Positions 5,454 to 26,124 of a stretch of DNA of 64,000 nt are shown in pieces. Position 1 is the stretch's first letter; each line of letters opens with the position of its first letter. The notes beneath the pieces were generated by a model, which had not been told where the DNA came from, searched no databases, and was given only the letters and a program-made list of their open reading frames with translations. Origin of the DNA: Scyliorhinus canicula (taxonomy: Eukaryota); contig NC_052173.1 in assembly GCF_902713615.1 (NCBI RefSeq), forward strand, positions 12,410,152 to 12,474,151, in the 5' to 3' direction. The position numbers were made by a program, and so were the translations under genes.

Positions 5454-7100
5454 TCAACTCTCTTCTGCACGACAGAGGAACCTCATACTCTGTGAAGCAT
5501 TTGGATAACTGACCATTTGAGTGGTGGTATAACTCATGGCAATCCCTGGCAGTGATTGTGTAACTGCCACCGGTGTAGAGATGGCAAGTGGTGCCATTGA
5601 GACTGGGGATGCCATCGCCTGGGCATAGGGTGCAGAGAGAGAAGCGCTAAGACGGGGCGGACTTTGGGCTAAAGCTTCAGAACACAAAGCATTGTGAGCT
5701 CTAGCTTGCGCTATCAATTCTTGATGAGAAATGGGCTGTGACCTCAGTGTCTGGTTGCTCAGGGTGGTGTGAGTCTCCACTATGCTATGGTTATAGTTGG
5801 TAACAGTGTGCATGGTTGGTTGTTGCGTTGGGTCAGCCCCGGTTTTCAGGATCCCCAACTTCACCTGCTTGCGCAAATCTGCATTCTGTTCCAGAAGGAC
5901 CTCATTGGTCAGCATTAGGCTTGACACCTGCTTTTTGAGTTCTTCATTGCGCTTTCTGAGCATATGATTTTCCTCCTCCAAAAAATTCAGTTCACGCGGG
6001 CGCAGACTAGGAGTGCTATAATCAAACACTTCAAACCGCAGGCCCTCGACCTTTCTCCTTTTCGGATGTTGTTCATAATCACATCTCTCAGTCTCATAGA
6101 GGTCATCCAAACGATCATATCTACAAGTCTCAGGAGAGAGTTCCCTATCTTGTGCTGACACACATTCTACACTTTTTTTATCATTGTCATCACGTTTCAA
6201 ATGCTGGAATTTACATTTGGAACCTCTTCGACACTTGCCCTTTAGAAAGTCCCGGCAGAATGGGATTTCCTTTGTAATAAGAGGAAGGTTAGAGGGCGAG
6301 AGACCAAAAGTCACAGCCACTGTCTGTTGCAAGTGAGCAGGAAGTTTCCCCGTTTTATTGTAGTAATTTTCATCCCCCTTTGTCCCATGAATGAACGTAC
6401 AGTTCTCCCGGGTACATTTACTATTCTGAAAGTACTGACAAAAGATTGATTCATGCCGCATGTCACCCACATTGTACGCCTCAACGTTGTCCGGGTGGAA
6501 GTACCTGCAATTCTTACCACGGTTGCAGACGTTGCGCAGAAAGTCGCGGCAAACATTCAGTTTGCTCTTGCTAGCCTCATATTTGCTATTATTGACTAAA
6601 TTATCAGCATCATCATTTAGATCAACATGGTTGGAGGCCTCAGTATCATCTGGGTGGAAGAACCTGCAATTCTTACCACGATTGCAGAGATTGCGCAGAA
6701 AGTCTCGGCAAATGTTCAGTTTGCTCTTGCCAGCCTCATCAGTGCCAATGTTCACTAAATTATCAGTGTTGTTCCTTATGTCAGTGAGGTCAGAAGCCTC
6801 AATATCATCTGGGTGAAAATACCTGCAATTCTTACCACGATTGCAGAGATTGCGCAGAAAGTCTCGGCAAATGTTCTGTTTGCTTTTACCAGCCTCATCA
6901 GTGCCCATGTTCACTAAATTATCAGTGTTGTTCCTTATGTCGGCGAGGTCGGAGGCCTCAGTATCATCTGGGTGGAAGTACCTGCAATTCTTACCACGGT
7001 TGCAGACATTGCGCAGAAAGTCTCGGCAAACATTCTGTTTGCTCTTGCCAGCCTCATATTTGCCGCTGTTGACTAAATTATCAGTGTCGTTCTCGGACAT
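5454..7100 (-). CDS. ZC3H10: ZC3H10-like paralog, zinc finger CCCH protein with expanded finger 1 (6 CCCH fingers), single coding exon, 548 aa
   Basis: Uninterrupted ATG-TGA ORF. Four copies of CRDFLRN(V/L)CNRGKNCR(Y/F)FH, then CQYFQNSKCTRENCTFIH and CRDFLKGKCRRGSKCKFQH, coiled coil LEEENHMLRKRNEELKKQV and TNYNH..THTTLS motif. Colinear with the ORF at 23219-24421. Polypyrimidine-CAG acceptor ends at 7149, just upstream. Confidence 0.9.
   Translation of the reverse strand: MSENDTDNLVNSGKYEAGKSKQNVCRDFLRNVCNRGKNCRYFHPDDTEASDLADIRNNTDNLVNMGTDEAGKSKQNICRDFLRNLCNRGKNCRYFHPDDIEASDLTDIRNNTDNLVNIGTDEAGKSKLNICRDFLRNLCNRGKNCRFFHPDDTEASNHVDLNDDADNLVNNSKYEASKSKLNVCRDFLRNVCNRGKNCRYFHPDNVEAYNVGDMRHESIFCQYFQNSKCTRENCTFIHGTKGDENYYNKTGKLPAHLQQTVAVTFGLSPSNLPLITKEIPFCRDFLKGKCRRGSKCKFQHLKRDDNDKKSVECVSAQDRELSPETCRYDRLDDLYETERCDYEQHPKRRKVEGLRFEVFDYSTPSLRPRELNFLEEENHMLRKRNEELKKQVSSLMLTNEVLLEQNADLRKQVKLGILKTGADPTQQPTMHTVTNYNHSIVETHTTLSNQTLRSQPISHQELIAQARAHNALCSEALAQSPPRLSASLSAPYAQAMASPVSMAPLAISTPVAVTQSLPGIAMSYTTTQMVSYPNASQSMRFLCRAEES
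6480..7086 (-). repeat. Coding tandem repeat, 4 x 159 bp (53 aa), each unit carrying one CCCH finger
   Basis: cctgcaattcttaccacg recurs at 6504, 6663, 6822 and 6981, an exact 159-bp period. Confidence 0.95.
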
Positions 7101-8917
7101 GTTTCCAGATTATTTCTGCGCTACTCAGCCAAGGCTCTCAATAAACCACTGCAAAAGAAAAAGAAGCCAGGTCTTTTACAATGAACAAGAGATTAATCTA
7201 CAAAGTAACTGTGGTTAATCCCTTTCTCACAAAAACATTGCAGATGCACTAACATCATGGATTCAATTAAAAAACTTATTTAGAGAGTGGCAGAAATTTT
7301 GTTTGAAAAACGCAAGGGAGAAGAAACATTACTTTGACCTGGATCTTGCTACAGTAACGACGATGAAATTATCAGCATTTGCCATCATTACTCCTCTGCA
7401 ACTGAAAGCAACTTCTAGAATCCGCACATGCGCAGAATAACGTGGGAATCAAGAAGTTGATGTCAGTGATTTTACTCTCCTCCTCTGGATCAAGCAAGAG
7501 TTTGTATTTTTATATGGAATATATTAATGCATTACAGGAGTTTTTAAAAAAAACACTGGCAAAACAAAACAATTGCCTTCTCAATCATTCTTGCTTTCGA
7601 AAAAAAGGGATTCTTGTGATATTTGTAGGAATTTATAAATAAAGAGACTTGCAATCAGCAGTGGAAACAAACTACTGAAGTATGCTGAGGAACAAATTAA
7701 AGAAATAGTGCTGATTTAGCTCACAAGAGCCTAGAGTTCAGTCTTCCAACAATTAAATCTTATTGCAACAAATACTATGTAAATAACTGAAAAGTCAACC
7801 GTGGACTTATCACGTGGAATTTCACAACAGAATCTATGCGCCAACTTTACCGCAGAAAATTCTTACAGCAAATAATTTCAGAATTGGTCCCTCAAATTCT
7901 AGTATTTTAAAAGAAATGTTTTAAAAGTTTGATGTCACACTTGAACGCTGTTAATGCCAAAATAGTCAAGGCAGGTATTTGATAGCTACTTGATATGACA
8001 GGTATATTTCAAACTACTAAATGCATTCCCAAATTACAAATTTGCAATATTACACACAAACACAACCATGACATGCTTATGGATTAATTTATACCATGTT
8101 ACAACTTTTATCCATACAGACTATTTATGGAAAACATAGGTATTAAATACAAACAGCATCAAGTTAACTTTTGCAATTTAACAGTGATTTAGAAATTAAA
8201 CACAAGTCACCCAATTTTCTTCGGCATCTTCAACATATATTGTCAACTTCATTGTAAGCTTTGTTATTGGAAATAAATGCTGTGGACTCTATTGCTACAA
8301 TTCACATTCCTCTTACACTACAATGTTTGACTCACATCGCTATTCCTTCACACCCTTTAATGAGGCAATGAAATACCATTTCTTCAAATTTCTCAAGGTA
8401 CTCCTGCCTCACTCTCTCGAATCTAACTAACAGTTACCACTTATTCCGATTGCTCTACCCAGAGTTCTCCTTTGTCATTTTACATCATCTCCTCTATTGC
8501 TAAAATTGTTCCCAAGAAGCTGTGCTTCTTTCATAACAAAAATCTTTCCATCCCCATTAATCCCCTGCCTCCATCCCCTCAACATGTCTTAACTCTAAAG
8601 TATGTCTATCAGAAATGATAACACTGTTCCCATATTTCAAGGGGTAGGAAAGAGGTTGACTCTTCTGGTATCGCTCATATTTCTGGATATGAAGTAAGAA
8701 AAGTAAGTCTGTTCGCCAATTTTCACCCCCTTTTTCTATTAACAACCGTTACATTTTAATTTCTAATAATAAAGTGCTTCTCCGAATTTTCTTCTTTAGT
8801 GCCCCCCAAGCTCCAAATATTGCTCTTCCTACATCCTCACAGTGATTAAGAAACAGTGTAATAAGTTTTGATTTAATCTAACTCATCTTTTCTCAGGACT
8901 TAAAAATAGTTGATTTT

Positions 8918-9440
8918 TTTCTTTTTTATAAATTTAGCGTACCCAATTATTTTTTTCCAATTAAGGAACAATTTAGCGTGGCCAATCCACCTACCCTGCA
9001 CATCTTTTGGGGTGTAGGGGTGAGACTTATGCAAACATGGGGATAATGTGCAAACTCCACACAGACAGTGACCTGAGGCCAGGATCGAACCTGGGACTTC
9101 AGTGCCGTGATGCAGCAGTTCTAACCACTGTGTCGCCCCAAATAGTTGACTTTTTACCTCTCTTTCTCCAACCTAATTATTACATCCCTCTTTACCTTAT
9201 CTTTTCATTTTCTTTTTTTTTTTAAATTTAGAGTACCCAATTATTTTTTCCAATTAAGGGGCAATTTAGCGTGGCCAATCCACCTACTCTGCACATTTCT
9301 GGGTTGTGGGGGCGAAACCCACGCAGACACGGGGAGAATGTGCAAACTCCACACAGGCAGTGACCCAGAGCCGGGATCGAACCTGGGACCTCAGCGCCGT
9401 GAGGCTGTTGTGCTAACCACTAGGCCACCGTGCTGCCCAT
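8918..9440 (-). mobile_element. Two adjacent type A SINEs (about 8918-9140 and 9213-9438)
   Basis: Consensus match. Flanking direct repeats aaatagttga.tttt and atcttttcattttct. Confidence 0.88.
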
Positions 9441-10904
9441 CTTTTCATTTTCTGTAGTGCCTCATAGAACAGCCTTAGTGCCTACGTTTTTTAATTTTAG
9501 AAAATCATCTTGATCAGCATTTTGCATCCAAGAGTATGGGTTTGATAGCAGCACATCACCAGAGAGGAGGAAAGGACCTGTTGCATTTTATTTTCTGCTA
9601 CCAGAGGCCTATTACTGACAGTAATCTAAAACATGTAAATGAGATTCAGTTGCATAGAAAGTGTAAATTGTTGGTCTAATTCCTTATAGTTCCATGTGAG
9701 AATGTCACAACTATCTGACAAATTGCTCCAAGTTCAGTACATCAAACTTAAAAAAGTTGATTCCAAGAGCAGCATAATGTCGACAAGTGATATCGTGCAA
9801 TTTGAAGTTGTTTTGCATCCTTGAGAGATTTGAACTTTACAGTGCGGCTCCAAATTCACAGAATATAACGTTTTGGTAAATAATTCCAACCAATTTCTGC
9901 TCCAATTTTTGATTACTGAACTCACTTTAATGTTACTATGCGGGGCAGGAAGGGCATTCCTTAACTATTTTTTCACCCAAGAAATAAAGATGGGACAGAG
10001 TACCCAATGACTATTGTTTTTTTGAAAAACTATATAGCAATCCAATCCAGTCAAAAAGCACATCAATGCATTCTGCCTCTCATCATCACCAACTCAGTAG
10101 GTAAATTAAACTTATAGTGTCGTACTGAGTAGCCATATAGGACAGCATGGTGCCAGGTTCACCCAGCTTACACTAAATTATCTCAACCAAGACAGCTGTG
10201 GAAGAATAAAATAGACATTAACTTCCCTTGATTATTAAAATCAAACAAAAAGCTCTAGCTTGAACACCATTAAAAAGTACACATATGGACAGCAGTGGGC
10301 ATAATATGGACATAATTAAGCTTGCCAGTGTGTCTCCATGGTTGAGTAGTTATCAATATTTATACGGGTTAATAATGACCACTTAGACAAAGCACTAAAG
10401 GAATCTGTCACCTGTGGGCACATACCTCACAGAGTGAGGTACGAGCTTTAGGACGGACTGGGAAAAAAGCTAGGCAGGACAGAGTGAGAGGGGGGGGGGG
10501 GAAGAGATCAGGATCTTCAAGATCATCTCTGATGCATTTCACAATGTACGATCCCAATAATAGCTGCAAATGAAAGGAGAAATCTGCTCCTTCCAGACAG
10601 GATGACAGAGAAAAATAATTTACCCTCCCTCATACCTTTTAAGTGATTGATCAAAGATCGCTGCTTAACTCCTCCTCTGCTGCTTGAATGGCAAAAGGTG
10701 CAGTGACCTAAAGTGGAAGATGGGGATTAAGAAACATTGTATAACTAAATATTCAAGATAATTTTAATCCAGTTGTCAAGATGTTTTTTAAAAAATCAAC
10801 TTATTTACTTAGAATCACAATGGTAACACAGTGGTTAGCACTGTTGCTTCACAGCGTCAGGGTCCCAGGTTCGATTCCCGGTTCGGGTTACTGTCTGTGT
10901 GGTG

Positions 10905-12731
10905 GACCTTTTATATGGTCACACTACTCTTATCTTTATGTGTTTTTGGTTTTCCTTTTTATTATTTTTGTTTTTCTTGTGTGTTTTTTGTTGTGGATTT
11001 TATGACCTGCATGTTTATTTACACGTGCAGGATTAGACCAGCATCCGCCACTGACACTGGGGTGGTGCTGGGCGTGATAACCAAGTAAAAGAACATAAAG
11101 TACCTGATGAATAAAACAAGAGGGGAGTGCCCCAAAACAGCGAGTGAAACACAGCCCAAAAAGAACGGGAAAGGGAACAAAAACTTAACAAAAACCCGTC
11201 AAAGTAAAGTGTGAAAATCGGTATTGATAAGGCAATCCAACCCCTGCGGTGCCCACCGAGCACGGAATGCTTCGAGTGTGCCCGTGGACACCGCATGCTC
11301 CCTCTCCAGGGACATCCGGCCGCGAACGTGGCTGTGAAAGATGGGCAGACAGTCAGGCTGGACAATCCCCTCGGTCGCCCGCTGCCTGGACCTATAAGTA
11401 GCAAGTTTGGCCCGGCCCAGGAGCAGGTTCACGAGGATGTCCTCCGCCTTCCCCACCCCCCTCCGCACCGGATGTCCGTAGATCAGGAGCGTGGGGCTGA
11501 AGTGCAAACAAAACCTCAACAACAACGTCGTCAAGAAATCAAAGAGGGAGTGCAGCCTAGGACAGACAAGATAAATGTGCTCCACGGTCTCCACCAGGCC
11601 GCAAAAGAGGCAGGTCTCTGGCAGAGCCGTGAAGTGGTAACACTGCCACGTTCAGCACCCTCCACCCTCCGCAGGTCACCGGGGTGAGTGAACATGAGGA
11701 GCACGTCATCAGCGTAAGCTGAGAGGACCACTCCCACGTCCGGCTCGCGCAGAACCAGCCCCGTTAACCTCCTCCGCAGGAGGCACAGGAAAGGCTCCAC
11801 GCATAGGGAATAAAGTTGACCGGACAGGGGGCAGCCCTGACGCACTCCTCTCCCAATGCGAAGGGGCGCCGTCAGGGATCCGTTAACCTTAATCAGACAC
11901 TCCGGGCGACAAAATGCGACCCGAACCCAAAGGCTTGCAGAGTCCCGAGCAAATACTCGTGCCCCACCCTGTCGAACGCCTTCTCCTGGTCAAGAGACAG
12001 GAAGGCGCTCGACATACCACGGGCAGCACGGTAGCATGGTGGTTAGCATAAATGCTTCACAGCTCCAGGGTCCCAGGTTCGATTCCCGGCTGGGTCACTG
12101 TCTGTGCGGAGTCTGCACGTCCTCCCCATGTCTGCGTGGGATTCCTCCGGGTGCTCCGGTTTCCTCCCACAGTCCAAAGATGTGCGGGTTAGGTGGATTG
12201 GCCACGCTAAATTGCCCGTAGTGTCCTAAAAATGTAAGGTTAAGGGGGGGGGGGTTGTTGGGTTACGGGTATAGGGTGGATACGTGGGTTTGAGTAGGGT
12301 GATCATTGCTCGGCACAACATCGAGGGCCGAAGGGCCTGTTCTGTGCTGTACTGTTCTATGTTCTACACCAGTCCTCTGGGAAAAATGAATAATGTCCCG
12401 GACCAGGTGGATGTCATAGATTGTGCGGTCCGGGACTGTGTAGGACTGGTCAGGGTGGATCATGTGGTCCAGTACCAGGCCAAGGCGTAAAGACAGCACC
12501 TTGGCAAAGATTTTATAGTTCGTGCTGAGGAGGGAGTTCTTAAGTTGGCGGACATCCTCCTTCTTGGGCAGCAGGGCAATGCTCCACGAAAGGGGCATCT
12601 CCACGGTCGCAATGCATTCCCCCAGGACTCCCGCATAGTCGCTCCCCAGGACGTCCCAGAACACCCTTAAGAACTCCACGGTCAGCCCGTCCAGCCCAGG
12701 GAATTTGCCCCGTGACAGGATGTTCAGGACT
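10905..12731 (-). mobile_element. 5'-truncated, internally deleted Tx1-like (L1 group) non-LTR retrotransposon
   Basis: GKFPGLDGLTVEF...FWDVLG, IHPDQSY, DQEKAFDRV, RQGCPLSGQLY, SAYADDV and C-terminal C..ETVEH...CPRL motifs. GC-rich body, A-rich 3' UTR. Splits a SINE and contains another SINE. Confidence 0.85.
12021..12366 (+). mobile_element. HE1-like tRNA SINE (tail type C, CR1-like LINE tail)
   Basis: A/B box head, V-core gtctgcgtggg..cctccgggtgctccggtttcctcccac, tail gggccgaagggcctgttctgtgctgta..ttctatgttcta shared with the LINE ends at 17297 and 37025. Confidence 0.85.
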
Positions 12732-13499
12732 GACTGCGGAGTCTGCACGTTCTCCCGGTGTCTGCATAGATTTGCTCCGGGTGCTCCGGTTTCCTCCCAC
12801 AAGTCCCGAAAGACGTGCTGTTAGGTGAATTGGACATTCTGAATTCTCCCTCTGTGACCCGAACAGGCGCCGGAATGTGGCGACTAGGGGCTTTTCACAG
12901 TCACTTCATTGCAGTGTTAATGTAAGCCTACTTGTGACAATAAAGATTATTATAAAGTGTGCACTTGGTGTGGCAACACTGATCGATCAGGAAGGTTTCT
13001 GATTCAATCGTTGTTGCATTACCTGATCTAGTTAATTCAGAGCACAGTGGAGAATCCATGGCAGTGAACCACAGAAGGGCACGGGGCCATGTAAAGTCCA
13101 TATTCTAGGTTCAGATTTTAAAGGAAGATTGGTGTACGTACTGGAATAAAGCACCAGAGGTTGGGCAGAAGCCATGGTCTGTACTGCCGTGCTACCAACA
13201 GTAAACCCGCTCCTGCATGCAATAAATGGGACGAAGTGACTTCAAATAATGTTGAAATGAGAAACTTAAAATCAAAATTCCCGTTATTGAAAATGATACT
13301 TTCGATATGGGAGCTCTTTAAAAAGTTCCTTATTTAGATTTTCATTTACACATTATCCTTGTTATATAAATAATCTCCAATTCTGTTTTTTTCCTCCCAA
13401 GCCAGTTATATCTTTTCAAATTGACAGTAGACACTCATTCCCTCCTTTCCTCAGAATAATAATCGTTCTTCGGCCTACCGGCATTCAGTCAGAAACCCT

Positions 13500-13830
13500 G
13501 CTCGAGAATCGTGCTGTTGACAGCTCTGGTGGCGGAAACTTCTCGAACTTGCTGCGAGGCTTCAATTGCGCTTCTAGGCCTCAACGGGCTTTACGCAAAT
13601 TGCTACAACTGCTCGCGCACAAATGGGGAAAAAAATCATTTTTTTTTTAAAGCTACAGAAACAAAAAAAATGTACTCGACCGATCCTGGAATAAAACCGA
13701 TGTAGAAAGCACAAACAAACACAACTACATTTACCTACGCGGTTCAAGCCTTTTTCCTCAGTCCTCCCAAGTACAACGAACATGGACTCAGGTCCTCCCA
13801 GACAAGAGCAACTGGGGAAGACGCTTTCGG
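13500..13830 (-). promoter_or_regulatory. Putative promoter / first non-coding exon of the ZC3H10-like paralog
   Basis: CpG-enriched. Reverse complement aligns with 18925-19180. Candidate donor GTAGGT/GTAAAT near 13729-13738. Confidence 0.55.
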
Positions 13831-13869
13831 TACCTCTCTGCAGTCATTGTTCAACGAACAGCAACTCGT

Positions 13870-14070
13870 TTACCAACTGCCTTCCATCCTATCACTGTCC
13901 CTTCCCCCTCCTCTGGGACTTCCTCAAACCTCACATCTCGCTCTTTTTCCAGTTCTGAAGACAAGTCCCTGACCTGGGATGTTCACTCGGTTTCATTCCC
14001 CACAGATGCTGGCAGACCTGCTGAATTTTCCTTTTAGTCTCCAATTTCCAGCATCAGCAGTATTTTATTA
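13870..14070 (+). mobile_element. Penelope-like element terminal (pLTR) remnant with degenerate hammerhead motif
   Basis: agttctgaaga..gtc...gacctg..atgtt...cacagatgctggcagacctgctga, the same family as 18490-18755 and 52815-52945. Confidence 0.6.
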
Positions 14071-14105
14071 GTATTAGTTTTTAATTCACTGCTACTTTTC
14101 TTCCA

Positions 14106-14290
14106 TGATGTGGAGTGGGGTGAGCACAGTAAGAGGTCTTACAACACCAGGTTAAAGTCCAACAGGTTTGTTTCGAATCACTAGCTTTCCGAGCGCAGCT
14201 CCATTCACCTGAGGAAGGAGCTGTGCTCCGAAAGATAGTGATTCGAAACAAACCTGTTGGACTTTAACCTAGTGTTGTAAGACTTCTTAC
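14106..14290. mobile_element. Foldback (about 75-bp arms) Penelope-type terminal element with minimal hammerhead ribozyme motif
   Basis: 14128-14202 is the reverse complement of 14217-14291. TCAC-CTGAGGA-A-GGAGC-tgt-GCTCC-GAAA-gata-GTGA at 14205-14241. Flanking direct repeat tacttttcttcca. Confidence 0.75.
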
Positions 14291-14312
14291 TTTTCTTCCA
14301 ATAATGACCCAA

Positions 14313-15805
14313 AGAACAAAGAAAAGTACAGCACAGGGTCAGGCCCTTTGGCCCTCCAAGCCTATGCCAATCATGATGCCCTAATTTTAAAAAAAAACTT
14401 CTGTCCTTCCTCGGTCTGTATCCCTCCCTATTCATCTACCCATCCAGATGCCACCTTAAATGTTGCCAATGTGCCTGCTTCCACCACATGCTCTGGCAGC
14501 ACATTCCAGGCACCCACCACTCTGCATGAAAGACTTACCCCCTCTCACCTTGAGCCTGTGCCCCCTTGTAATCAACATTTCCACCCTTGGAAGAAGCCTC
14601 GGACTATCTGCCCTGTCTATGCCTCTCATAATTTTGTAGACCTCTATCAGATATCCCCTCAGCCTCCGTCTTTCCAGTGAAAACAATCCCAGTTTATTCA
14701 ACCTCTGCTCATAGCCAACATCCTCAAGACCAGGCAACATCCTGGTGAACCTTTGAACTCTCTCCAAAGCTTCCACGTACTTCTGATAATGTGGTGACCA
14801 GAACTGCACTCAATACTCCAAATGCAGCCTAACCATGGTTTTATGTAGCTGCAACATGATTTCCCAACTCCTGTACTCAATGCCTTCTTAATCACCTTGG
14901 CCACTTGTGTTGCCACTTTTGGGGAACCTGCACACCTAGATGCCTCTGTATTTTAATATTCCTCAGGGTTCTGCCATTTACAGTATAATTCATACCTAGA
15001 TTTGATCCTCCAAAATGCATCACCTCCCATTTGTCCAGACTAAACTCCATCTGCCATTTCAAGTCTCCAATCTATCTATATCCTGTTGTATCCTCTGACA
15101 ATCCTCAGCACTATCAGCAACTCTGCCAATCTTCGTGTCATCTGTAAACTTAATCAGACCACCCGCATTTTCCTCCAGATCATTTATATTACTACAATGA
15201 ACAGAGGTCCCAGCACTGATCCCTGCGGAACACCACTAGCTACACATCTCCATTCTGAAAAACACCCTTCTGCCGCTACTCCCTGTCTTCTATAACCAAG
15301 CCAGTTCTGTATCCATCTAGCCAGTCCACTCCGAATCCCATGTGATTTTAGTTTTTGTACCAGTCTGCTATGTGGGACCTTGTCAAATGCCTTACTCAAG
15401 TCCATATAAACAACATCCACAGCCCTTCCCTCATCAATTTACTTGTCACCTCTTCAAAAAACTCAATCAATTTGGTGAGACATGACCTTCCCTGTACAAA
15501 ACCATGCTGCCTGTCACTAACTCGTCCATTTTCCTCCAAATGTGCATATATCCTGTCTCTCAGTATCTTTTCCAAAAGCTTCCCCACCACTGATGTCAGG
15601 CTGTCCTGCCTATGATTGGCTGGATTGTCCGTGCTTCCTTTCTTAAACAAGGGAACACTATTGGCTATTGTCCAGTCCTCTGGAACCTCACCTGTGGTCA
15701 AAGAGGATGTGAAGATATCTGTTAAGGCCCCAGCTATTTCTCCCTTGCCTCCCGCAGTAACCTGGGATAGATCCCATCCAGCCCCGAGGACTTGTCTACC
15801 TTAAT
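14313..15805 (-). mobile_element. CR1-group (HER1-like) LINE, 3' part with degenerate RT
   Basis: [70 protein letters not shown] motifs in the ORF track. Confidence 0.9.
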
Positions 15806-16125
15806 GCAAGAATGTCCTGCTCTTGTCTCCCACAGAATTTCCATTGGTCTCTTCTACCTTGATAACCTTCATTGTTTTCTGTTTCCATTCTGGTATTTGA
15901 TTAGGTACTGAACAAAACTCAGATGGAATTCTCCCATCCTGGGACCAAGTGCCATAGTGGTGGCGGGAACATAGAGTGTTTCCCTCTGCAGCAGCCAGAT
16001 CTTCTGGCCCCAACCTCATTAATAATGCATCCGGGTGCTTTACACCATATTCAGTGGCAGGGCAGGCCTGGATGGTGTGTAGTCTGCCACCATGTCTGGG
16101 GACCATACTAAAAAGGCCCCCAATT

Positions 16126-16322
16126 ACTGCCTCACGGCACCGAGGTCCCAGGTCTGATCCCGGCCCTGGGTCACTGTCCGTGTGGAGATTGCACATTCTC
16201 CCCGTGTCTGCGTGGGTCTCACCCCCACAATCCAAAAGATGTGCAGGGTAGGTGAATTGGCCACTCTAAATTGCTCCTTAATTGGAGAAAAAAATTGGAT
16301 ACTCTAAATTTATTTTTAAAAA
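16126..16322 (+). mobile_element. Type A SINE (5'-truncated)
   Basis: Consensus match. Confidence 0.8.
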
Positions 16323-17296
16323 GGCGCCGAACATCACTGACCCCACCATTGAAGAAAGAAGGTGGACCACCTGAAAATGAAGGTAGATCTCCAGGAGCAC
16401 TCTTGAGACTGGAAGATGGACTCCTGAGAATGAAGATGGATCTCCAGGTACATTCTGAGGCTGTAAGATGGACCCCTCCAGGACACTTAATCTGGAAGAT
16501 TCACCTACCAATGCCCCCCCCCCCCCCCCCCCCCCCCCCGGCCCACTACTGTTGTGTTCCAGGATTGCGGGTGGCCTCCATCCTGAACTTTGGAGACAGC
16601 CCCCAGGCATTGTTCAGATGTCCTGACATCTGCACGCCACGTTGTACGAACATGTCATGCTGGCATGTTCTCCTGCCGACATTGTGGAGAATCTGAGGTG
16701 GGGGGTGTGGGCCTTCATCTGTATCCCATTAGCGGGATGCAAATTAGATTCACCCTGTCCTCTGGCAGGTTTTCTGGCTGCTCTGGCAGGCACCAGCAGA
16801 AGATTCGACTGTAAATTCACGGCGGCACAAAACCGATTTCTGACATGTCTTACCCCTCCCCTCCCCTGAGCATTCCAAAGGGACCATTCCCTCTGTGACA
16901 CCCTGGTCCACTCCTCAATCACCCCCAACAACCTCTTCCCTACCAATGAAAGCTTCTGCAAGTGCCAGAGATGAAACACTTGCCTCCTCCCTTCTCATTG
17001 TCCAAGGCCCAAACACTCTTCCCAAGTGATAAAGTGATCTTACATACTTCTCTCAATTTAGTACACTGTATTTACTACTCCTGATGCAATATCCTCTATA
17101 TTGGGGAGACCAAACCAAGATTGGGTGACTGCTTTGTGGAACACCTCCATTCAGTCCACAAATGTGACCCCACACCTCCAGCCTGTAAATTCCATTCTCT
17201 ACTCTCTGTCCTTACCCTACTGCAATGTTGCAATGAAGCTCAACACAAGCTTGAGGAACAACATGTCAGCTTTCAATTGGCCACTTTATAGCCTTA

Positions 17297-18092
17297 GAAC
17301 ATAGAACATAGAAAAATACAGCACAGAACAGGCCCTTCGGCCCACAATGTTGTGTCGAACTTTTGTCCTAGATTGAGAACAAATAAATCTACACCTCATC
17401 ATTTACCGTAATCCATGTACCTATCCAATAGCCGCTTGAAGGTCCCTAACGTTTCCGATTCAACTACTTCCACAGGCAGTGCATTCCATGCCCCCACTAC
17501 TCTCTGGGTAAAGAACCTACCTCTGACATCCCCTCTATATCTTCCACCATCCACCTTAAATTTATGTCCCCTTGTAATGGTTTGTTCCACCCGGGGAAAA
17601 AGTCTCTGACTGTCTATCTATTCCCTTGATCATCTTATAAACCTCTATCAAGTCGCCCCTCATCCTTCTCCGTTCTAATGAGAAAAGGCCTAGCACCCTC
17701 AACCTTTCCTCGTAAGACCTACTCTCCATTCCAGGCAACATCCTGGTAAATCTCCTTTGCACCTTTTCCAAAGCGACCAGAACAGCACACAGTACTCCAA
17801 ATGTGGCCTTACCAAAGTTTTGTACAGCTGCATCATTACCTCATGGCTCTTAAATTCAATCCCTCTGCTAATGAACGCTAGCACACCATAGGCCTTCTTC
17901 ACAGCTCTATCCACTTGAGTGGCAACTTTCAAAGATCTATGAACATAAACCCCAAGATCTCTCTGCTGCTCCATATTTCCAAGAACCCTACCATTAACCC
18001 TGTATTCCGCATTCATATTTGTCCTTCCAAAATGGACACCCTCACACTTTTCAGGGTTAAACTCCGTCTGCCACTTCTCAGCCCAGCTCTGC
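17297..18092 (-). mobile_element. Young CR1-group LINE 3' fragment
   Basis: [44 protein letters not shown] and (ttctatg)n tail. Near-identical to 37025-37667. Confidence 0.9.
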
Positions 18093-18185
18093 GGCCTTCT
18101 GGACTCAACATTGAGCTGAGCAACAAATTGTAACCACCATTCCCATTTGTTCAGATGTTGATGATGATTCTACTTTCCCATTCAG

Positions 18186-18482
18186 TGCTGCACAGTAGTT
18201 AGCACTGTTGCTTCACAGTGTCAGGGTCCCAGGTTCGATTCCCGGCTTGGGTCACTGTCTGTGCGGAGTCTGCACGTTCTCCCCATGTCTGCGTGGGTTT
18301 CCTCCGGGTGCTCCGGTTTCCTCCCACAAGTCCCGAAAGACGTGCTGTTAGGTGAATTGGACATTCTGAATTCTCCCTCTGTGACCCGAACAGGCGCCGG
18401 AATGTGGCGACTAGGGGCTTTTCACAGTAACCTCATTGCAGTGTTAATGTAAGCCTACTTGTGACTACGAAGATTATTAAAT
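18186..18482 (+). mobile_element. tRNA/V-SINE, tail type B
   Basis: Near-identical to 62459-62772. Confidence 0.88.
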
Positions 18483-18899
18483 TACAGACTCACACCTCCA
18501 ACCTTCTGTTTGTTCCTCCACCCGCTCCATTACCATCTCCTTTTCCCCTGCACCATCAACCTTTTTGTCATCTTCCACACAGACTTTCCTTTTGACCTTT
18601 CTCCCCGCCTTTGTACTCAGTTCAAACCCCGTCCCCGGTTCTGATGAAAGGTCACTGACCTGAAACGTTTGTGTGTGAAATGCGTTTTTTTTTCTCTCTC
18701 GGAGATGTTGCCTGACCTGCTGAGTATTCCCAGTATCTTCCGTTTTTAATTCCAGCTGTGCCCGTGTCGTTGGCGACTGTTTAACGTTACAGACATTTCA
18801 TTTGAAAAATTATCTCGGAGGGAGTGGAGTTCAGTTTAAATACGTTTTCATTTAAAATAGTGAATGAAATTGGTAATATGACTGAAAGAAATTAGGCAG

Positions 18900-19200
18900 A
18901 CAAATTGCCGCTGTTTGGTGCTGAGCCGCTCTTGTCTGGGAGGACTTGTTTGATGCTCGTTGTGTTTGGAGGAGTGAAGGCGCTGAACCGTGTATGTAAA
19001 TACATTCCTTTTTTCTGCCCATTTTGTAACCGTTCTGATCCTCTCTGATATTTATTTCGACAGTTTAAACATGCCGGATTGATCTGAGTGAGGGTATAAT
19101 TTTGTTTGCGTGTCTCTGCTATTGTTTTATGCAGCAGGAAGTTAAGGCCTAGAAATCCCATGACAGCCTTCGAATCCTCGACCAGCTTGTTACTGTTAGA
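18900..19200 (+). promoter_or_regulatory. Putative promoter / first non-coding exon and donor region of ZC3H10
   Basis: Locally CpG-enriched unique sequence. Homologous in inverted orientation to 13500-13820 (shared gctcttgtctgggaggac, tgaaccg.gta.gtaaat, aggcctagaa). Candidate donor GTATGT/GTAAAT near 18992-19001. Confidence 0.55.
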
Positions 19201-19999
19201 CGATGTGATTTGCAGTAAATAGCTCTGAAAATCAGACGTTTATTAGCATTGTTTTGAGAATTCGTGGGTCACCTCTACATTTGAAACACTAAGGAATCAA
19301 TATTTGCTATTAATGAGACTCTTGTTTCCCAGTGAAATGTTTTCTTTGGTACAATAGTTCATATTTGGATCATGCCTTCAATGTGCCAAAAAGATCCAAG
19401 GGATTTCAAGAGGAGGGGATTGAGCCCTCAGTGAGAGTTGGGTGAGGTGACCCAAAGTGCAGTTGACGAGAGATTTTGAGGGCGGAAAAAGATGTAGTAC
19501 GGTGGGAAAAATCTAGCAAGAGAATTCAAGGATATGGATGTTGATGACGAAAGGCTTATTAAAGAGAGGCTAAAGAGGTTGCGATGTACAAGGAGGATGG
19601 GGTTGAAGAATGAAAATATTCTAGAAGTAAATTGAGGGCGAGGCCATTGCGAGATTTTTCCTGAGAATTTTGGAAAGTGTGGAAGTCAATGTAGACCTAA
19701 GCAACTGGGACTGAATATAGAGTAGGATTCTGGTTTGAGTGAGATATTTCTTGGGTCCAACAAGGATAGGATTGAAGTCCAGCTTGGAGGTGATGAATGT
19801 AATTTGAAGTTTGAAATTCAATTTGTGGTTTGACAGGGTACATGAGGTTACACACTGTCAAACTCCAGACCTACAGCAATGTAGTTGACTTTTAAATAAC
19901 CTCCGAAATGTCTTTGCAAGCCACTCAAATCAAGGGAAATTAGGGATGGGCAACAAATGCTGGCCTTGCCAGCGACACCCACTTCCCATGAAAGAATTG

Positions 20000-20232
20000 T
20001 TATTTTTATTTTTTTAAATTTAGAGTACCCAATTCATTTTTTCCAATTAAGGTGCAATATAGCGTGGCCAATCCACCTACCCTGCACATCTTTGGGTTGT
20101 GGGGGTGAGACTCGCGCAGACACGGGGAGAATGTGCAAACTCCACACGGACAGTGACCCGGGGCCGGGATTGAACCCGGGTCCTCGGTGCCGTGCGACAG
20201 CAGTGCTAACCACTGCACCACCGTGCTGCCCT
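20000..20232 (-). mobile_element. Type A SINE with 15-bp TSD, inserted at the tail of an older repeat (about 19820-19998)
   Basis: TSD tcccatgaaagaatt on both sides. Confidence 0.88.
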
Positions 20233-22202
20233 CCCATGAAAGAATTTAAAAAAGAAAAAATGGTGGGGATGAAAATGACCCTGAATATTTGTTTCTCAGA
20301 CACTACTGTACAATTTTGAAAATGTGGTATAACATAGAGGTTACAATTCCTTTTATATAGCTGAGCTATTTGACATGCACTAACTGATGTCAGTAGTGGG
20401 GCTTCTCTGATGCAAATGAGAAATTAAAGAAAAAGGTGACTCGTTAATTGACATCCTGAAATTTGATAACTGAAAAAAATTACAATTGCATAACCAGGAC
20501 TTTTAAAGGACTTTATTTTTCTCCCTTATGCCAATTCTTTTCTGCAAATAGTGACTCATCTAGACGTATAGTTCCACTGCTGCTGATATGTCTCCAGTAT
20601 CTCACCCAAGTTGACATTCCTCATTTGTGAACCTGAACAGTGAGTGCCAATAGGCTATTTGACCATGAAGAGTATTGCAACCTATCTGATCCTATTTGCA
20701 CCTCGTGTCCACATGGGTACATTTCCAGCAGTTTGTAGAATTAGCCACACAATGTCATCATCAGATGCTGATGGTGACTATTGCATCAGGCTCTCTGAAA
20801 CGAGGAACAAAATGCAGGGAGCATTTTTCTCCTGAGCTGCTGAGAGTGGAAAATTAAAATATTTTTTGGAAAGTTGCAGTTTCTACTCTCGTCACTGTCT
20901 TCTCTGCTCCTCGCTCCTAAAGTGGTGGCTTGCTGTTTGCTAGGAGCCTGGTGGAAAACTATAGAGATCAGCAGTGAAAATGCACAATCCAAATCTTTCT
21001 GAAATTAGGTAGTTGTAAACAGCAGTGTTATAGGCACACAGGCTTCTGCTAATGCTATGATGTAACTGTTTGCTAGGAGGTTTGTGACAGTTCGCTTTCC
21101 AGTTCCTTTTTTCTTGATTCCTCCTCTGGACAAGCCATGGATTTTGCTTGATGATGTGATTGAATTCAAAAAGCTGGAGCAGCTGCAGAAGTGAGCCTTT
21201 ATTCTAGCATTCCATAGCACAATATATTGCAGGTTAGTATACCAATCTGTAGTTAATTTGAGGGTCACAAAGGTCAGTTGTAGAATCCTTATTGCTAGAA
21301 GCGGCTAACTCAGCAAAGTACTGGGGCCAAACTTGAGTCTCTGGTCTGAATAGCTCTGGTAGTACTCAGGATTAAAATCCTTAAGCATTGGAGCCTTAAT
21401 CCTTAAGCATTGGAGCCTTAATCTTTCCAATAATTATTTTTTTTCCAGAATTCCACACAAGTTTATTCTGGTGCAATGATTTATTTGTTTACATGGCATT
21501 TTAGGATCATATCTTGATACAAGATTATGTTTTTAAAAATCGTGGTTATTGTCGGGTGCAGTTGCTTCTGATTTTTATCCTTTATACTAAAACATGACTG
21601 GCCTAAATTTAATGAGATTATTCAAAATGCAGGTTATTATGGGTTTTGTGCATTAATATCTCTTATGCGCATGAAGGCTACTTTCACTGATTGTGAATCT
21701 CACGGCTTGGTGTTTAACTCCTAGATTCCGCACAAGGCGCTAAACATCAATATAACTTGTCTTCCTCACCTTCCCGACCCCATTTCTCACCAAATCCGCA
21801 TGCCGAATGTGGCTTAATTCATGAGCACCCAATCGATTTCACTTGTTAAACAAGTGCTGCCAGTGAAACTCGTCTTTGTGAACCTAGAATGACATCTTTT
21901 TATTAATTTGTGGGGATTACAGTTCATCATATTGAAAGCAGATATCCTATACATTTGATATAATGGGGATGGGGGGGGGGGAATGGGTTGGAGGCCAGTC
22001 AGATAAAAGATATATTGCAAAAGATTTTTGGTAAGCTTTCATACTAGTTGATATGCTACAAGGAATAGAGTGTTTGCCTTGTACGCCACTCAGAAGGAGG
22101 AGGATCCATTCTCTGTTCTGCTGTAGGTGTGTATTCCACTATTGGTTTATAGGTTGTAGTCGGAACAGACTAGAAATGAGCAGCAGTCATGTTATGTTTC
22201 AC

Positions 22203-22428
22203 GGGGCAGCACGGTGGCGCAGTGGTTACACAGTTTCCTCAAGGCGCCGAGGTCCCAGGTTTGATCCCGGCTCTGGGTCACTGTCCGTGTGGAGTTTGCA
22301 CATTTTCTCCCTGTGTTTGCGTGGGTTTCACCCCCACAACCCAAAGATGTGCAGGTTAGGTGGATTGGCCACGCTAAATTGCCCCCTAATTAGAAAAAAT
22401 GAATTGGATACACTAAATTTTAAAAAAA
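22203..22428 (+). mobile_element. Type A SINE
   Basis: Consensus match. TSD gtta(t/c)gtttcac. Confidence 0.88.
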
Positions 22429-22717
22429 GTTACGTTTCACAAATTTTGGATATTATGTTGTCTAAACAGCTGCTTCCAATTGTCATTTAACTTTTTGCTG
22501 GCTCTGATTTATTTTGAAAAAATTGAATATGGAGGCTCTGCAGACACTCTAGTCAGTCATTTCTGAAAAGAAATGCAGAATTAATTACGTTGCTATATAC
22601 TTCGTTGAATTCATAATGGCTGGTCTATATCAGGATCAGACTTGGGTTGACTTGTTTTGATTACAATCCGAGATGGGAGAGCAACAACAGCTCCCTATTA
22701 TGGAAGAATACTCATGC

Positions 22718-22835
22718 GGGGCAGCACGATGATGCAGTAGTTAGCCCTGCTGCCTCATGGCGCCGAGGGCCCGGGTCCAATCCTGGCCCTGGGTCACTTG
22801 TCTGTGTGGAGTTTGCACATTCTCCCCGTGTCGTC
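22718..22835 (+). mobile_element. Type A SINE, 3'-truncated
   Basis: Head and start of core only. Confidence 0.7.
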
Positions 22836-23218
22836 TCCCCCCCCCCCACACCCCTGAGTACAAATTAATACTCCTCATTCCCCAACTCGGACCAAGGATC
22901 AATGATTAGGGAAATGAAAGTGTGACTCTGATACAGTGGGAGATAGTTTTCTTGTTGATGTAGTGAAGACAAATTGTGGGGGACTGTGTGATGCAACTAA
23001 CCTGATAATGTTTGTTGCTGCCACTGCACGCACAGATTTGGAAACCGTTTTCATTCCCACCACAATTATCGCTTAGCTTGCTGAGCACAAAATGCAGTGG
23101 TTCAAGTAACACTTAGGTTGTAGACGAATTCCTCCTTCTCTGTAAAGATGTGCCTTGATTTTCTTTTTCAGATGTTTTTGTGTACAGTGGCTGAGAAGCA
23201 CAGAAATAGTCTGTGAAG

Positions 23219-24421
23219 ATGCCGGATAAAGATAATTTATTTAACAGTGGTAATGATGAGGCTGGCCACAGCTCAGATGATATTTGCCGAGACTTCCTGC
23301 GCAATGTCTGCAAACGTGGTAAGCGCTGCAAGTTCTACCACCCTGACATTAATGAGGTGTCCGACTTGGGCGTAAAAAAGAATGAATTTGTCTTTTGTCA
23401 TGACTATCAGAACAAGGAGTGCACCCGCATTAACTGCAAGTTTATTCATGGAACAAAAGAGGACGAGGATCATTACAAAAAGTCAGGAGAGCTTCCCCCA
23501 CGCCTGCGTCTTACAGTGGCCATGGGTCTTGGCCTTTCACCTTCTGACCTCTCTTTTAAAAAAGGTGAGGTCCCAATCTGCCGAGACTACCTGAAAGGTG
23601 ACTGTCAAAGAGGATCTAAGTGCAAATTCCGACATTTGAAACGTGATGAATACGAGTATGAAAACAGAACTTTGGAGAGGTTGTCAAGAGACCAAGTGCT
23701 TTCACCTGTAGTGCGTCGATATGACCCATTCGATGACCTCTATGACACCGATCGCTATACTGATTACGACCATGTCCTAAAGCGACGAAGAGTCGATGGC
23801 TTGCGATTTGAAACTTATGATTTTAATATCCCTAATTCACGTCCAGTTGACTATCGGTTTCTGGAGGAGGAGAATCTGATGCTCCGAAAGCGTGTTGAAG
23901 AACTCAAGAAGCAGATCTCAAATTTGATGGCAACTAATGAGGTACTTTTGGAGCAAAACGCACACTTCCGCAACCAAACTAAGGTGGTCACGTTGACTTC
24001 CACTCCCACTGCGACAGAGCAAACACTGGCAGCACCAACTGTGGGCGCAATCACCAATTACAACCATGGTATAGCGCAGACTCACACCACGTTGAGCAGC
24101 CAAGCACTTCAACCACGACCTGTCACCCAGCAAGATTTAGTGGCAACTGCTGGAGCTTCAGCTGTGCCACCTACCAATGCTGCACCAACAGCACAGCATC
24201 TTAATCCTGAGATTGCTTCTCTGCCTGCAGCACTTGCCCAGACCATTGCCCAGGGAATGGCACCTCCAGTTTCCATGGCCCCAGTGGCTGTCTCTGTTGC
24301 ACCAGTGGCAGTATCAATTGCACAAGCACTGCCAGGAATTACCATTAGCCATGCCACCACTCCAATGGTTACTTATCCAATTGCATCGCAGAGTATGAGG
24401 ATAACAGCAATTCCTCACTGA
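23219..24421 (+). CDS. ZC3H10: Zinc finger CCCH domain-containing protein 10, single coding exon, 400 aa
   Basis: MPDKD...ICRDFLRNVCKRGKRC...FCHDYQNKEC...GLSP...VPICRDYLKGDCQRGSKCKFRH...LEEENLMLRKRVEELKKQ...SQSMRITAIPH matches vertebrate ZC3H10 as I recall it. True ATG is at 23219; the ORF track starts at a GTG. Acceptor ttctttttcAG at 23170-23171. Confidence 0.96.
   Translation: MPDKDNLFNSGNDEAGHSSDDICRDFLRNVCKRGKRCKFYHPDINEVSDLGVKKNEFVFCHDYQNKECTRINCKFIHGTKEDEDHYKKSGELPPRLRLTVAMGLGLSPSDLSFKKGEVPICRDYLKGDCQRGSKCKFRHLKRDEYEYENRTLERLSRDQVLSPVVRRYDPFDDLYDTDRYTDYDHVLKRRRVDGLRFETYDFNIPNSRPVDYRFLEEENLMLRKRVEELKKQISNLMATNEVLLEQNAHFRNQTKVVTLTSTPTATEQTLAAPTVGAITNYNHGIAQTHTTLSSQALQPRPVTQQDLVATAGASAVPPTNAAPTAQHLNPEIASLPAALAQTIAQGMAPPVSMAPVAVSVAPVAVSIAQALPGITISHATTPMVTYPIASQSMRITAIPH

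Positions 24422-26057: not shown

Positions 26058-26124
<67 letters not shown>

Follow-up and report, generated by a model that had tools for sequence, protein, structure and literature searches.

Scyliorhinus canicula carries two copies of ZC3H10, very probably the product of an ancient inverted duplication of the entire gene; the minus-strand copy is a transcribed, correctly spliced coding gene of sharks and rays. These two are the only ZC3H10 copies in the stretch of DNA analysed (64 kb, hereafter the window), and they lie in divergent orientation (Table 1). The preliminary description had reported two colinear, divergent ZC3H10 open reading frames, and both are present at the same coordinates. 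Mammalian ZC3H10 is a single-copy gene whose dual roles through RNA and DNA binding are disputed; they concern mitochondria, thermogenesis, pri-miRNA processing and the repression of interferon-stimulated genes.

Table 1. Features of the ZC3H10 pair, numbered from the first letter of the window.
Feature	Position	Strand	Details and basis
Paralogue CDS	5454..7100	-	548 aa, single coding exon; stop 5454-5456; ORF call, orthologues, contig coverage
Four tandem 159-bp (53-aa) units, one finger-1-type CCCH finger each	6453..7088	-	
Paralogue fingers 5 and 6 (homologues of ZC3H10 ZF2 and ZF3), SP site between them	6201..6440	-	
Paralogue KRRK basic cluster (NLS equivalent) and coiled coil/bZIP-like zipper	5859..6062	-	~aa 347-414
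Paralogue coding exon, 5'UTR portion	7101..7148	-	acceptor AG 7149-7150; transcript contigs (4 runs, 4 studies)
Paralogue 3'UTR	4600..5453, continuing below 4600	-	single contigs cover 4600-6522 plus ~170-200 nt beyond
Paralogue non-coding exon 2	10636..10707	-	72 nt; AG precedes, GT follows; transcript contigs
Paralogue non-coding exon 1 according to transcripts	13479..13671	-	contigs of X1, X10 and X13; donor GT 13478-13477; 13671 is where contigs halt at a T/A run, not a mapped 5' end
Paralogue upstream conserved block	13729..13809	-	GTAAAT donor-like end; match to 19001-18928
Spacer between upstream blocks	13810..18927	.	5.1 kb, mostly dispersed repeats
Canonical upstream conserved block	18928..19001	+	match to paralogue block; cross-species conservation
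Canonical coding exon, 5'UTR portion	23172..23218	+	acceptor AG 23170-23171; by homology alone (paralogue's mapped acceptor, orthologues)
Canonical ZC3H10 CDS	23219..24421	+	400 aa, three CCCH fingers; homology

The plus-strand copy is, judging from sequence identity and synteny, the ZC3H10 orthologue. Its open reading frame spans 23213..24421, with the orthologous start at the ATG at 23219. The protein is 98% identical to that of Chiloscyllium, 92% to Rhinoraja, 77% to Callorhinchus and ~75% to birds and reptiles, and MIP lies downstream, as it does in Callorhinchus.

The minus-strand paralogue has the traits of the ZC3H10 family: overall similarity, finger order, the NLS, zipper, SP site and R89 equivalent, and a conserved 5'UTR intron acceptor ahead of the single coding exon. 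It is colinear with the canonical protein (51% identity over 394 aa, E = 2e-132; 66% nucleotide identity in the CDS). Its best, near-full-length similarity is to ZC3H10, and all matches other than to paralogues are to ZC3H10 (E = 1e-134 to 1e-84); the Pfam matches are zf-CCCH and zf-CCCH_10. Four ZF1-type fingers are followed by one of ZF2 type (C-x7-C-x4-C-x3-H) and one of ZF3 type. The tandem units have their Cys positions at aa 25, 78, 131 and 184, and TRF reports a period of 159 with 3.8 copies and 86% matches at 6493-7092. All six fingers keep their C-C-C-H ligands; the 1.6-kb frame with every zinc ligand, noted from the window initially, is intact in the orthologues too. Alignment with primate ZC3H10 shows retention of the R89 equivalent, the LSPS site, KRRK/KRRR and the zipper; the mammalian roles of R89, the SP site, the NLS and the zipper have been described (PMC6911170, PMC13375009). 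One-to-one orthology with mammalian ZC3H10 fails for the minus-strand copy, the paralogues forming a clade of their own with 100/100 support.

Homology between the two copies extends beyond the coding sequence. Positions 6948-7212 match 23365-23109 at 73%, a stretch that spans the intron end, acceptor and 5'UTR, and a seven-sequence alignment shows a common polypyrimidine tract, AG and 48-nt leader, in agreement with the preliminary description. A second match pairs 13729-13809 with 19001-18928 (75.6%, E = 9e-7). The same segment had been proposed as a candidate first exon; the homologous block is real, and the first exon of the transcripts lies elsewhere (Table 1). Homology of the proximal 3'UTRs, also proposed, is weak: BLAST found no match between the copies there, and forced alignment gives a core of only ~22 nt. 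Since both copies have a homologous 5'UTR intron acceptor and upstream block, the earlier conclusion that the duplication was an inverted one at the DNA level, rather than a retroposition, is supported. Promoter, 5' non-coding exon(s), coding exon and 3'UTR would all have been copied head to head. The plus copy would then have remained the conservative orthologue, while the minus copy would have diverged rapidly early on, expanded its 53-aa finger-1 module in frame to four copies, and afterwards been frozen by purifying selection.

The upstream block is present in both paralogues of every species examined (9 of 9 sequences from five species) and has an invariant GT.AAT donor-like end. The block at 13729..13809 may be an alternative or extended first exon, or a core promoter. 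The spacer has repeat matches elsewhere in the window and a very high contig depth, as for repeats, and we attribute the 5.1-kb separation of the blocks to inserted repeats. In Heptranchias and Rhinoraja the copies form nested inverted repeats whose inner arms are 243 nt and 212 nt apart, respectively (inverted-repeat arms in L001 and L006). This close spacing of the homology blocks suggests that both genes may ancestrally have been served by a bidirectional promoter.

The paralogue is expressed and correctly spliced. Its transcript contigs, from five studies, show GT-AG splicing at 13479|10707 and 10636|7148. One contig of 448 nt maps to 13671-13477, 10705-10636 and 7150-6978; in four runs from four studies contigs part from the genome at 7150 and run on into the sequence of 10638-10667, and intron depth is zero in three of those four runs. 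Paralogue and canonical gene were both found in eight shared runs of probable RNA; with coded run metadata, their identity as RNA is a guess based on the spliced contigs and empty introns. The preliminary description had predicted a junction from about 13735 to 7148. The acceptor was right, the joins seen are the two given above, and the 72-nt middle exon had been missed.

RefSeq already contains the paralogue gene model as 'ZC3H10-like', with entries for 17 or more species of shark and ray, so the gene is uncharacterised rather than unknown. A paper describing a six-finger paralogue was not found in the literature searched, nor was any previously described ancient vertebrate paralogue with which it might group. 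The orthologues are 545-557 aa long and 84-98% identical among sharks and rays; six CCCH fingers are present in 16 of 17 (Pristis has five), and the ligands are intact in all 17. The preliminary description had called the paralogue lineage-specific. The lineage comprises all Elasmobranchii (at least 17 species), and is possibly older still, rather than being this species. Finger units group by position rather than by species: across species, units 3 and 4 each form a clade (100/99), and all 20 units together stand apart from canonical finger 1 (100/100). By this tree, the four-fold amplification of finger 1 is older than the shark/ray split and has proceeded without concerted evolution.

The duplication itself could date to the elasmobranch stem, to the chondrichthyan stem or to an earlier time. 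In the best tree the paralogue groups with the chondrichthyan canonical genes (84/90), outside Callorhinchus and elasmobranch ZC3H10. This position would be a long-branch artefact if the duplication occurred on the elasmobranch stem, after the holocephalan split, to which we give slightly less than an even chance. Such a history is the most parsimonious (one gain, no losses), and the paralogue stem is ~10 times the length of the canonical stem. One ZC3H10 protein was recovered for Callorhinchus, which lacks a second copy in the 10 kb upstream despite the MIP synteny; however, the holocephalan evidence consists of this one species and its 10-kb flank, and a tree joining the paralogue to the elasmobranch canonical gene without Callorhinchus is weakly rejected by the AU test (p = 0.031, delta lnL 8.1).

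What the paralogue does can be approached through its modules. Mammalian ZC3H10 binds RNA with ZF1 together with ZF2, and in mouse its bZIP-like basic-zipper region binds DNA. A protein with ZC3H10 function would be expected to bind RNA through ZF1/ZF2, to recognise TYCCNG/TTTC in DNA through the basic-zipper region and to be nuclear; for the paralogue, the evidence bearing on these activities is residue conservation. The AlphaFold2 monomer model of the paralogue was unusable (mean pLDDT 33), helix 368-414 being the sole better-scoring part. A model of the paralogue with canonical ZC3H10 forms a parallel in-register coiled coil, with residue 229 exactly opposite 388. Its ipSAE of 0.62 (best control, 0.00) passes a mark that 51 of 78 solved complexes attain, as do 2 of 108 mismatched pairs; at least 66% of contacts agree between runs, and partner pLDDT is at least 69. 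The model supports heterodimer formation as a predicted binding. Any close relative would be expected to pass, and the model shows neither heterodimers in the cell nor a preference over homodimers.

We consider the following picture evenly balanced between right and wrong. The paralogue would be a regulator of the ZC3H10 type that acts in the nucleus and binds nucleic acids, and its ZF1 RNA-binding module would have become a longer, higher-avidity array; the bZIP-like basic and zipper region would serve homodimers as well as heterodimers with canonical ZC3H10; and the two genes would ancestrally have been co-regulated from a bidirectional promoter. Somewhat unlikely, in our estimate, is that the paralogue instead acts mainly on canonical ZC3H10, through the shared zipper, as a modulator, decoy or dominant-negative. 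In favour of this, the two copies resemble each other strongly in the zipper and basic cluster, the in-register model passes its controls, a promoter core is common to both genes in some species, and both were found in the same runs. However, six intact fingers would be superfluous in a pure decoy, and it is the fingers that are most constrained (ZF5-6) or most elaborated (ZF1, four-fold), which argues that the paralogue binds nucleic acids in its own right. The boldest reading seems unlikely on present evidence: an elasmobranch two-subunit ZC3H10, kept since before the shark/ray split, in which the six-finger paralogue would be co-transcribed from a bidirectional promoter shared ancestrally, would heterodimerise through the zipper and, by lending the complex a four-fold expanded RNA-binding arm, would redirect or widen its RNA and DNA targets.

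The two copies have evolved at unequal rates, as had been expected from the window. Across 10 species pairs, dN/dS is 0.12-0.16 for the paralogue and 0.02-0.10 for the canonical copy, with dS similar in the two genes, and the paralogue evolves 2-3 times faster. All regions of the paralogue lie between 0.03 and 0.21 (finger-1 units 0.21, fingers 5-6 0.03, basic cluster/zipper 0.07). Its stem branch measures 0.87 changes per site, compared with 0.03-0.06 for the canonical lineage; dS on this branch is saturated, and its dN/dS is not computable. We infer that the paralogue may have undergone neofunctionalisation. The very long stem of 0.87 could also reflect an older tandem duplicate, of stem-gnathostome or earlier age, lost in bony vertebrates and holocephalans. 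A position outside all canonical gnathostome ZC3H10 genes is not rejected by the AU test (delta lnL 3.2, p = 0.258), and the elasmobranch-only origin is weakly rejected (p = 0.031). We nevertheless think so early a date improbable: the best tree favours the chondrichthyan canonical grouping (84/90), at least two independent losses would be required, no such copy turned up in hagfish, in amphioxus or among hundreds of bony-vertebrate matches, the copies are still recognisably homologous outside the coding sequence, and fast-evolving branches are expected to drift towards the base of a tree.

We consider it very improbable that the minus copy is decaying or functionless, a pseudogene whose frame is open by chance. 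Its 2-3 times faster evolution and the loss of one repeat unit in a ray, Pristis, would fit decay, but the frame is intact in 17 species whose divergence covers hundreds of millions of years, dN/dS is far below 1 both overall (0.12-0.16) and in fingers 5-6 (0.03), every zinc ligand is retained, and spliced transcripts come from five studies. Inverted duplications are a known product of mis-assembly (for example a haplotype joined wrongly, or a scaffold that was collapsed or inverted), but the chance of such an artefact here is close to nil: we found no support for it, the copies share just 66% of their DNA sequence and are transcribed as distinct sequences, and the head-to-head pair recurs in all five independent assemblies from five species (the window, Heptranchias, Narcine, Rhinoraja and Chiloscyllium), with 13-27 kb from ATG to ATG.

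If it exists, a two-subunit ZC3H10 would be a lineage-specific rewiring of a regulator that controls mitochondrial genes and interferon-stimulated ones. Sharks and rays offer a natural experiment, with a long-conserved copy in which only RNA-binding finger 1 has been multiplied and the DNA-binding zipper retained; a comparison of what each copy targets could tell finger-dependent activities of the ZC3H10 family from zipper-dependent ones. The pair is also a clean example of an inverted whole-gene duplication with its symmetry axis still visible, of an intragenic repeat escaping concerted evolution, and of a compact, putatively bidirectional promoter core whose halves transposons have driven apart in some lineages by inserting between them.

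The paralogue pair is not a novel kind of system. Pairs with a bidirectional promoter have divergent TSSs less than ~1 kb apart. The ZC3H10 pair resembles those arising by inverted duplication in being divergent, with mirror-image blocks 212-243 nt apart in Heptranchias and Rhinoraja; it differs in the window, where 5.1 kb separates the blocks. Another divergent extra vertebrate copy is the 'ZC3H10-like' protein of Ambystoma mexicanum (P0178), 56% identical to the shark canonical protein. It has three fingers and 382 aa and groups with amphibian ZC3H10, and by these features is an independent duplication rather than an orthologue of the elasmobranch paralogue. The nearest solved structures (E = 1e-7 to 2e-3) are those of MBNL1/2 (3d2q, 5u6l) and of CPSF30/CPSF4 and Yth1 (6fuw, 6urg, 7zgp), which also have C-x8-C-x5-C-x3-H fingers in series, reading short RNA motifs additively. 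Outside the fingers they are not homologous to the paralogue, which has a 53-aa period, ~34-aa linkers of near-identical repeats, a zipper and putative RNA binding. The closest likeness is to vertebrate ZC3H10 itself. Both have the module order ZF1-type, ZF2, ZF3, SP site, basic NLS cluster and coiled coil/bZIP-like zipper, an Ala/Pro/Val-rich C-terminus, and a single coding exon with a 5'UTR intron ending just upstream of the ATG. The paralogue differs in its four-fold finger 1, which brings it to six fingers and 548 aa, in its 2-3 times faster evolution and long stem, and in its presence only in sharks and rays among the taxa seen.

The window contains two long open reading frames on opposite strands, both where the preliminary description had placed them (see Table). 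The minus-strand frame encodes a protein of 548 residues, in which all of the zinc ligands (24/24) are present, as had been claimed for it. Judged by its orthologs, the plus copy begins translation at the ATG at 23219, and the canonical protein has 400 residues. The paralog is colinear with the canonical protein, with 51% identity over 394 residues (E = 2e-132), and the two coding sequences are 66% identical at the DNA level. Pfam recognises zf-CCCH/zf-CCCH_10 stretches in both copies, five in the minus and two in the plus one; with both proteins as queries, tblastn over the 64 kb turned up no third ZC3H10. The finding is real, and its earlier interpretation is correct in the parts that could be tested. 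The window also carries a poly-C run and a degraded L1-type LINE, whose ORF fragments translate into ORF1-like, AP-endonuclease-like and reverse-transcriptase-like sequences and which coincides with a GC content of 0.55 and a GC skew of -0.46.

Table. Features of the window, with strand and supporting evidence
Feature	Coordinates	Strand	Evidence
Paralog ORF	5454..7100	-	ORF scan
Canonical ORF	23213..24421	+	ORF scan
Paralog tandem repeat, 159 bp, 3.8 copies	6493-7092	-	86% matches
Paralog exon 1	at least 13671 down to 13479	-	spliced contigs
Paralog exon 2 (72 nt)	10707..10636	-	spliced contigs
Paralog coding exon	from 7148 downward	-	spliced contigs
Match upstream of both ATGs	6948-7212 vs 23365-23109		BLASTN, 73%
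Separate upstream block	13729-13809 vs 19001-18928		BLASTN, 75.6%, E 9e-7
Reverse-transcriptase-like ORF fragment, 179 aa	12263-12802	-	
Spacer element	17614-17863		
Poly-C run (68 nt)	26059-26126		
L1-type LINE, degraded	26300-30750	-	
MIP/aquaporin-0 exons	42200-44460	-	

Homology between the two copies extends upstream of the coding sequences. BLASTN aligned a stretch reaching upstream of both start codons and, separately, a more distant block; whatever else aligned between the two halves belongs to dispersed repeats. When seven sequences were aligned, the copies proved to share a 48-nt leader, the AG and polypyrimidine tract before it, and the final ~70 nt of the intron, in agreement with the acceptor and 5' UTR homology recognised earlier. 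Given that intron position and upstream non-coding sequence are common to the copies, the duplication involved the whole gene at the DNA level and was not a retroposition, as had been proposed. The suggested homology of the proximal 3' UTRs is too weak to count: it gives no BLAST hit, and forced alignment yields only a ~22-nt core. In both genes, the intron end and 5' UTR preceding the ATG are conserved between sharks and rays far above synonymous sites. Positions 7101-7258 of the paralog are 91% identical to Narcine over 158 nt, and positions 23101-23218 of the canonical gene are 85% identical over 118 nt, whereas dS is ~0.5. Both coding sequences also have a reduced dS at their 5' ends (0.26-0.30 vs 0.35-0.68 elsewhere). 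These observations point to a nucleotide-level element, possibly one involved in splicing control, translational control or autoregulation.

The plus copy is the ortholog of vertebrate ZC3H10. It is 98% identical to a cluster of many sharks and rays, 92% to Rhinoraja, 77% to Callorhinchus and ~75% to bird and reptile ZC3H10. MIP lies downstream of it on the opposite strand, matching Callorhinchus in order and orientation. RefSeq lists canonical-gene isoforms of 358 residues in several sharks. The Rhinoraja longicauda contig CM130204.1 (locus L007) encodes two canonical proteins of 397 residues (P0011 and P0014; sisters in the tree, 100/99) beside the six-finger paralog, and the second may be either a further recent duplication or an assembly haplotype duplicate. 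The axolotl (Ambystoma mexicanum) has a divergent ZC3H10-like protein (P0178; 382 residues, three fingers, 56% identity to the shark canonical copy), and ZC3H10 is therefore not single-copy in all tetrapods. This protein groups with amphibians (Xenopus) on a long branch and represents an event independent of the elasmobranch paralog.

The minus copy is a second intact gene, as the preliminary description had it, but its lineage is wider than this one genome. Many elasmobranchs have orthologs of 545-557 residues and 84-98% identity, for each of which RefSeq uses the name 'zinc finger CCCH domain-containing protein 10-like'. They were found in sharks (Chiloscyllium plagiosum, C. punctatum, Scyliorhinus torazame, Stegostoma, Hemiscyllium, Heterodontus, Mustelus, Cetorhinus, Heptranchias and Pristiophorus) and in rays (two species of Mobula, Hemitrygon, Hypanus, Pristis, Narcine and Rhinoraja), the closest being that of S. 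torazame (98%), which indicates that the window comes from a catshark, probably Scyliorhinus canicula. The protein collection searched also contains both proteins of the window itself. Short isoforms of 335 and 180 residues are annotated for Hemiscyllium (group of P0150, P0156 and P0158, which includes a Pristis protein). Our searches of the PMC and bioRxiv literature turned up neither a paper on cartilaginous-fish ZC3H10 nor one on any ZC3H10 paralog, an absence that is not proof; the paralog is lineage-wide and annotated in RefSeq, with no describing paper in the literature searched.

The tandem repeat of the paralog encodes four copies of the first CCCH finger (first Cys at residues 25, 78, 131 and 184), followed by one ZF2-type and one ZF3-type finger. 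Exactly four units at identical positions are present in 16 of 17 orthologs; the exception is Pristis, with three units (495 residues in P. pectinata). We built a DNA tree from the 20 units of five species, with canonical finger 1 added. In it, unit 3 and unit 4 each form a clade that spans sharks and rays (100/99); units 1 and 2 come out as grades, without any grouping by species, and canonical finger 1 stands apart from the full set of 20 (100/100). It follows that the finger was amplified after the gene had duplicated but before sharks and rays diverged, and that the units have escaped homogenisation since then.

Selective constraint was assessed using coding sequences of both genes from Heptranchias, Narcine, Rhinoraja and Chiloscyllium, together with Callorhinchus. 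Pairwise NG86 dN/dS is 0.12-0.16 for the paralog, rather than near 1, the value that had been named beforehand as counting against it; the canonical gene gives 0.02-0.10, and for a given species pair the two genes have similar dS. By region, the paralog values are 0.21 (four repeat units), 0.03 (fingers 5-6), 0.15 (acidic linker), 0.07 (coiled coil) and 0.15 (C-terminus). The paralog is clearly under purifying selection in every region, while evolving 2-3 times faster than ZC3H10. Relative to Callorhinchus, dS of either shark copy is saturated (NG86 undefined).

The paralog is present in 18 sequencing runs of the same organism from seven studies, and the canonical gene in eight of these runs. 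Contigs were placed for five paralog runs, one from each of five studies. The run records carry no RNA label; we take the runs to be RNA because the contigs are spliced and the introns empty. Contigs from four runs (X1, X6, X10 and X15) cover the coding sequence and 3' UTR, and all depart from the genome at 7150 with the same continuation, which occurs once in the window (10638-10667). Depth in the intron beyond 7218 is zero in three runs and 3.7 vs 44 in the fourth. One 448-nt contig maps to 13671-13477, 10705-10636 and 7150-6978, contigs from X10 and X13 agree with it, and the junctions read as canonical GT-AG introns. The exon 1 contigs end at a T/A run at 13671. The acceptor predicted at 7148 matches the spliced contigs; a direct splice from 13735 to 7148 was not seen, the middle exon having been overlooked. 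The block proposed as a first exon does exist as homologous sequence, but the observed exon 1 lies ~60 nt downstream, and the block could be either exon or promoter. Paralog intron 1 contains a reverse-transcriptase-like fragment, around which (11.9-13.0 kb) the RNA contigs have repeat-like depth.

In each of the five genomes compared, a single contig carries the two genes head to head, with ATG-to-ATG distances of 16.1 kb in the window, 15.8 kb in Heptranchias, 22.3 kb in Narcine, 13.1 kb in Rhinoraja and 27.2 kb in C. punctatum. An 80-bp upstream block ending in an invariant GT.AAT donor-like motif is kept in 9/9 aligned sequences (five paralog, four canonical). Heptranchias has three nested inverted repeats about a centre, with inner arms 243 nt apart, and the arms in Rhinoraja are 212 nt apart. 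The upstream blocks of the window are 5.1 kb apart, and most of the sequence in between recurs elsewhere in the window and has repeat-like depth. The simplest reading of these sequences is that the inverted duplication originally had its axis of symmetry immediately 5' to the first exon, which would have created a compact bidirectional promoter, and that transposon insertions later stretched this core in some lineages. A spacer element in the window has counterparts (L005 1808-2545, L004 264-1124 and L007 8703-8833) upstream of ZC3H10 in Callorhinchus, Narcine, Rhinoraja and Heptranchias, with two at some loci; the element is probably an old dispersed repeat family common to cartilaginous fishes.

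The age of the duplication was addressed with a tree of 48 proteins (LG+C20+F+G4, 402 columns). All paralogs fall into one clade (100/100), whose stem measures 0.87 changes per site and which adjoins Callorhinchus plus elasmobranch canonical ZC3H10 (84/90). Hagfish ZC3H10 is misplaced beside the chondrichthyan clade (88/74; branch length, 1.15), and forcing it out costs just 0.74 lnL; the rooting is therefore weak. Our leading, though tentative, placement is the elasmobranch stem. Protein searches recovered a single ZC3H10 from Callorhinchus, and there is no second copy within 10 kb upstream of that gene; against this placement, the AU test weakly rejects the paralog with elasmobranch canonical genes, excluding Callorhinchus (p = 0.031, delta lnL 8.1). 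Duplication on the chondrichthyan stem, followed by loss in holocephalans, is a possibility of lower probability, and grouping the paralog with all chondrichthyan canonical genes gave p = 0.054 (delta lnL 0.74). An origin before the chondrichthyan stem is unlikely, although a position outside all gnathostome canonical genes is not rejected (p = 0.258, delta lnL 3.2); attraction toward the base of the tree is to be expected from the long paralog stem.

DNA binding by mouse ZC3H10 (TYCCNG) depends on a bZIP-like region rather than on the fingers, the protein's RNA-binding motifs are ZF1 and ZF2, and S126 is a p38 site (PMC6911170). In human cells, repression of interferon-stimulated promoters at TTTC motifs requires the three fingers, the NLS, the coiled coil and R89 (PMC13375009). 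According to our alignment, the paralog retains the R89-equivalent arginine, the LSPS site, the KRRK/KRRR cluster and a nearly unaltered zipper. AlphaFold2 prediction of the full paralog from a 15-sequence alignment was unusable (mean pLDDT 33, pTM 0.19). We modelled the basic-zipper segments as two chains (canonical 182-261 and paralog 341-420; three runs, three controls). The ipSAE was 0.62 in three runs vs 0.00 for the best control; the pass mark was reached by 51/78 solved complexes and 2/108 mismatched pairs. Contacts keep exact register (229 with 388), agreement between runs covers at least 66% of them, and the partner pLDDT is at least 69. The model supports a zipper dimer rather than demonstrating one, and does not distinguish homo- from heterodimer. 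In our working model, to which we give an even chance as a whole, the paralog would be a nuclear ZC3H10-type regulator with a longer RNA-binding arm of higher avidity, able to pair with canonical ZC3H10 and ancestrally co-expressed with it. The nearest solved structures by sequence are the tandem CCCH RNA binders MBNL1/2, CPSF30 and Yth1. Unlike canonical ZC3H10, the paralog has a multiplied ZF1; it is a structural variant of a known family and not a new kind of system.
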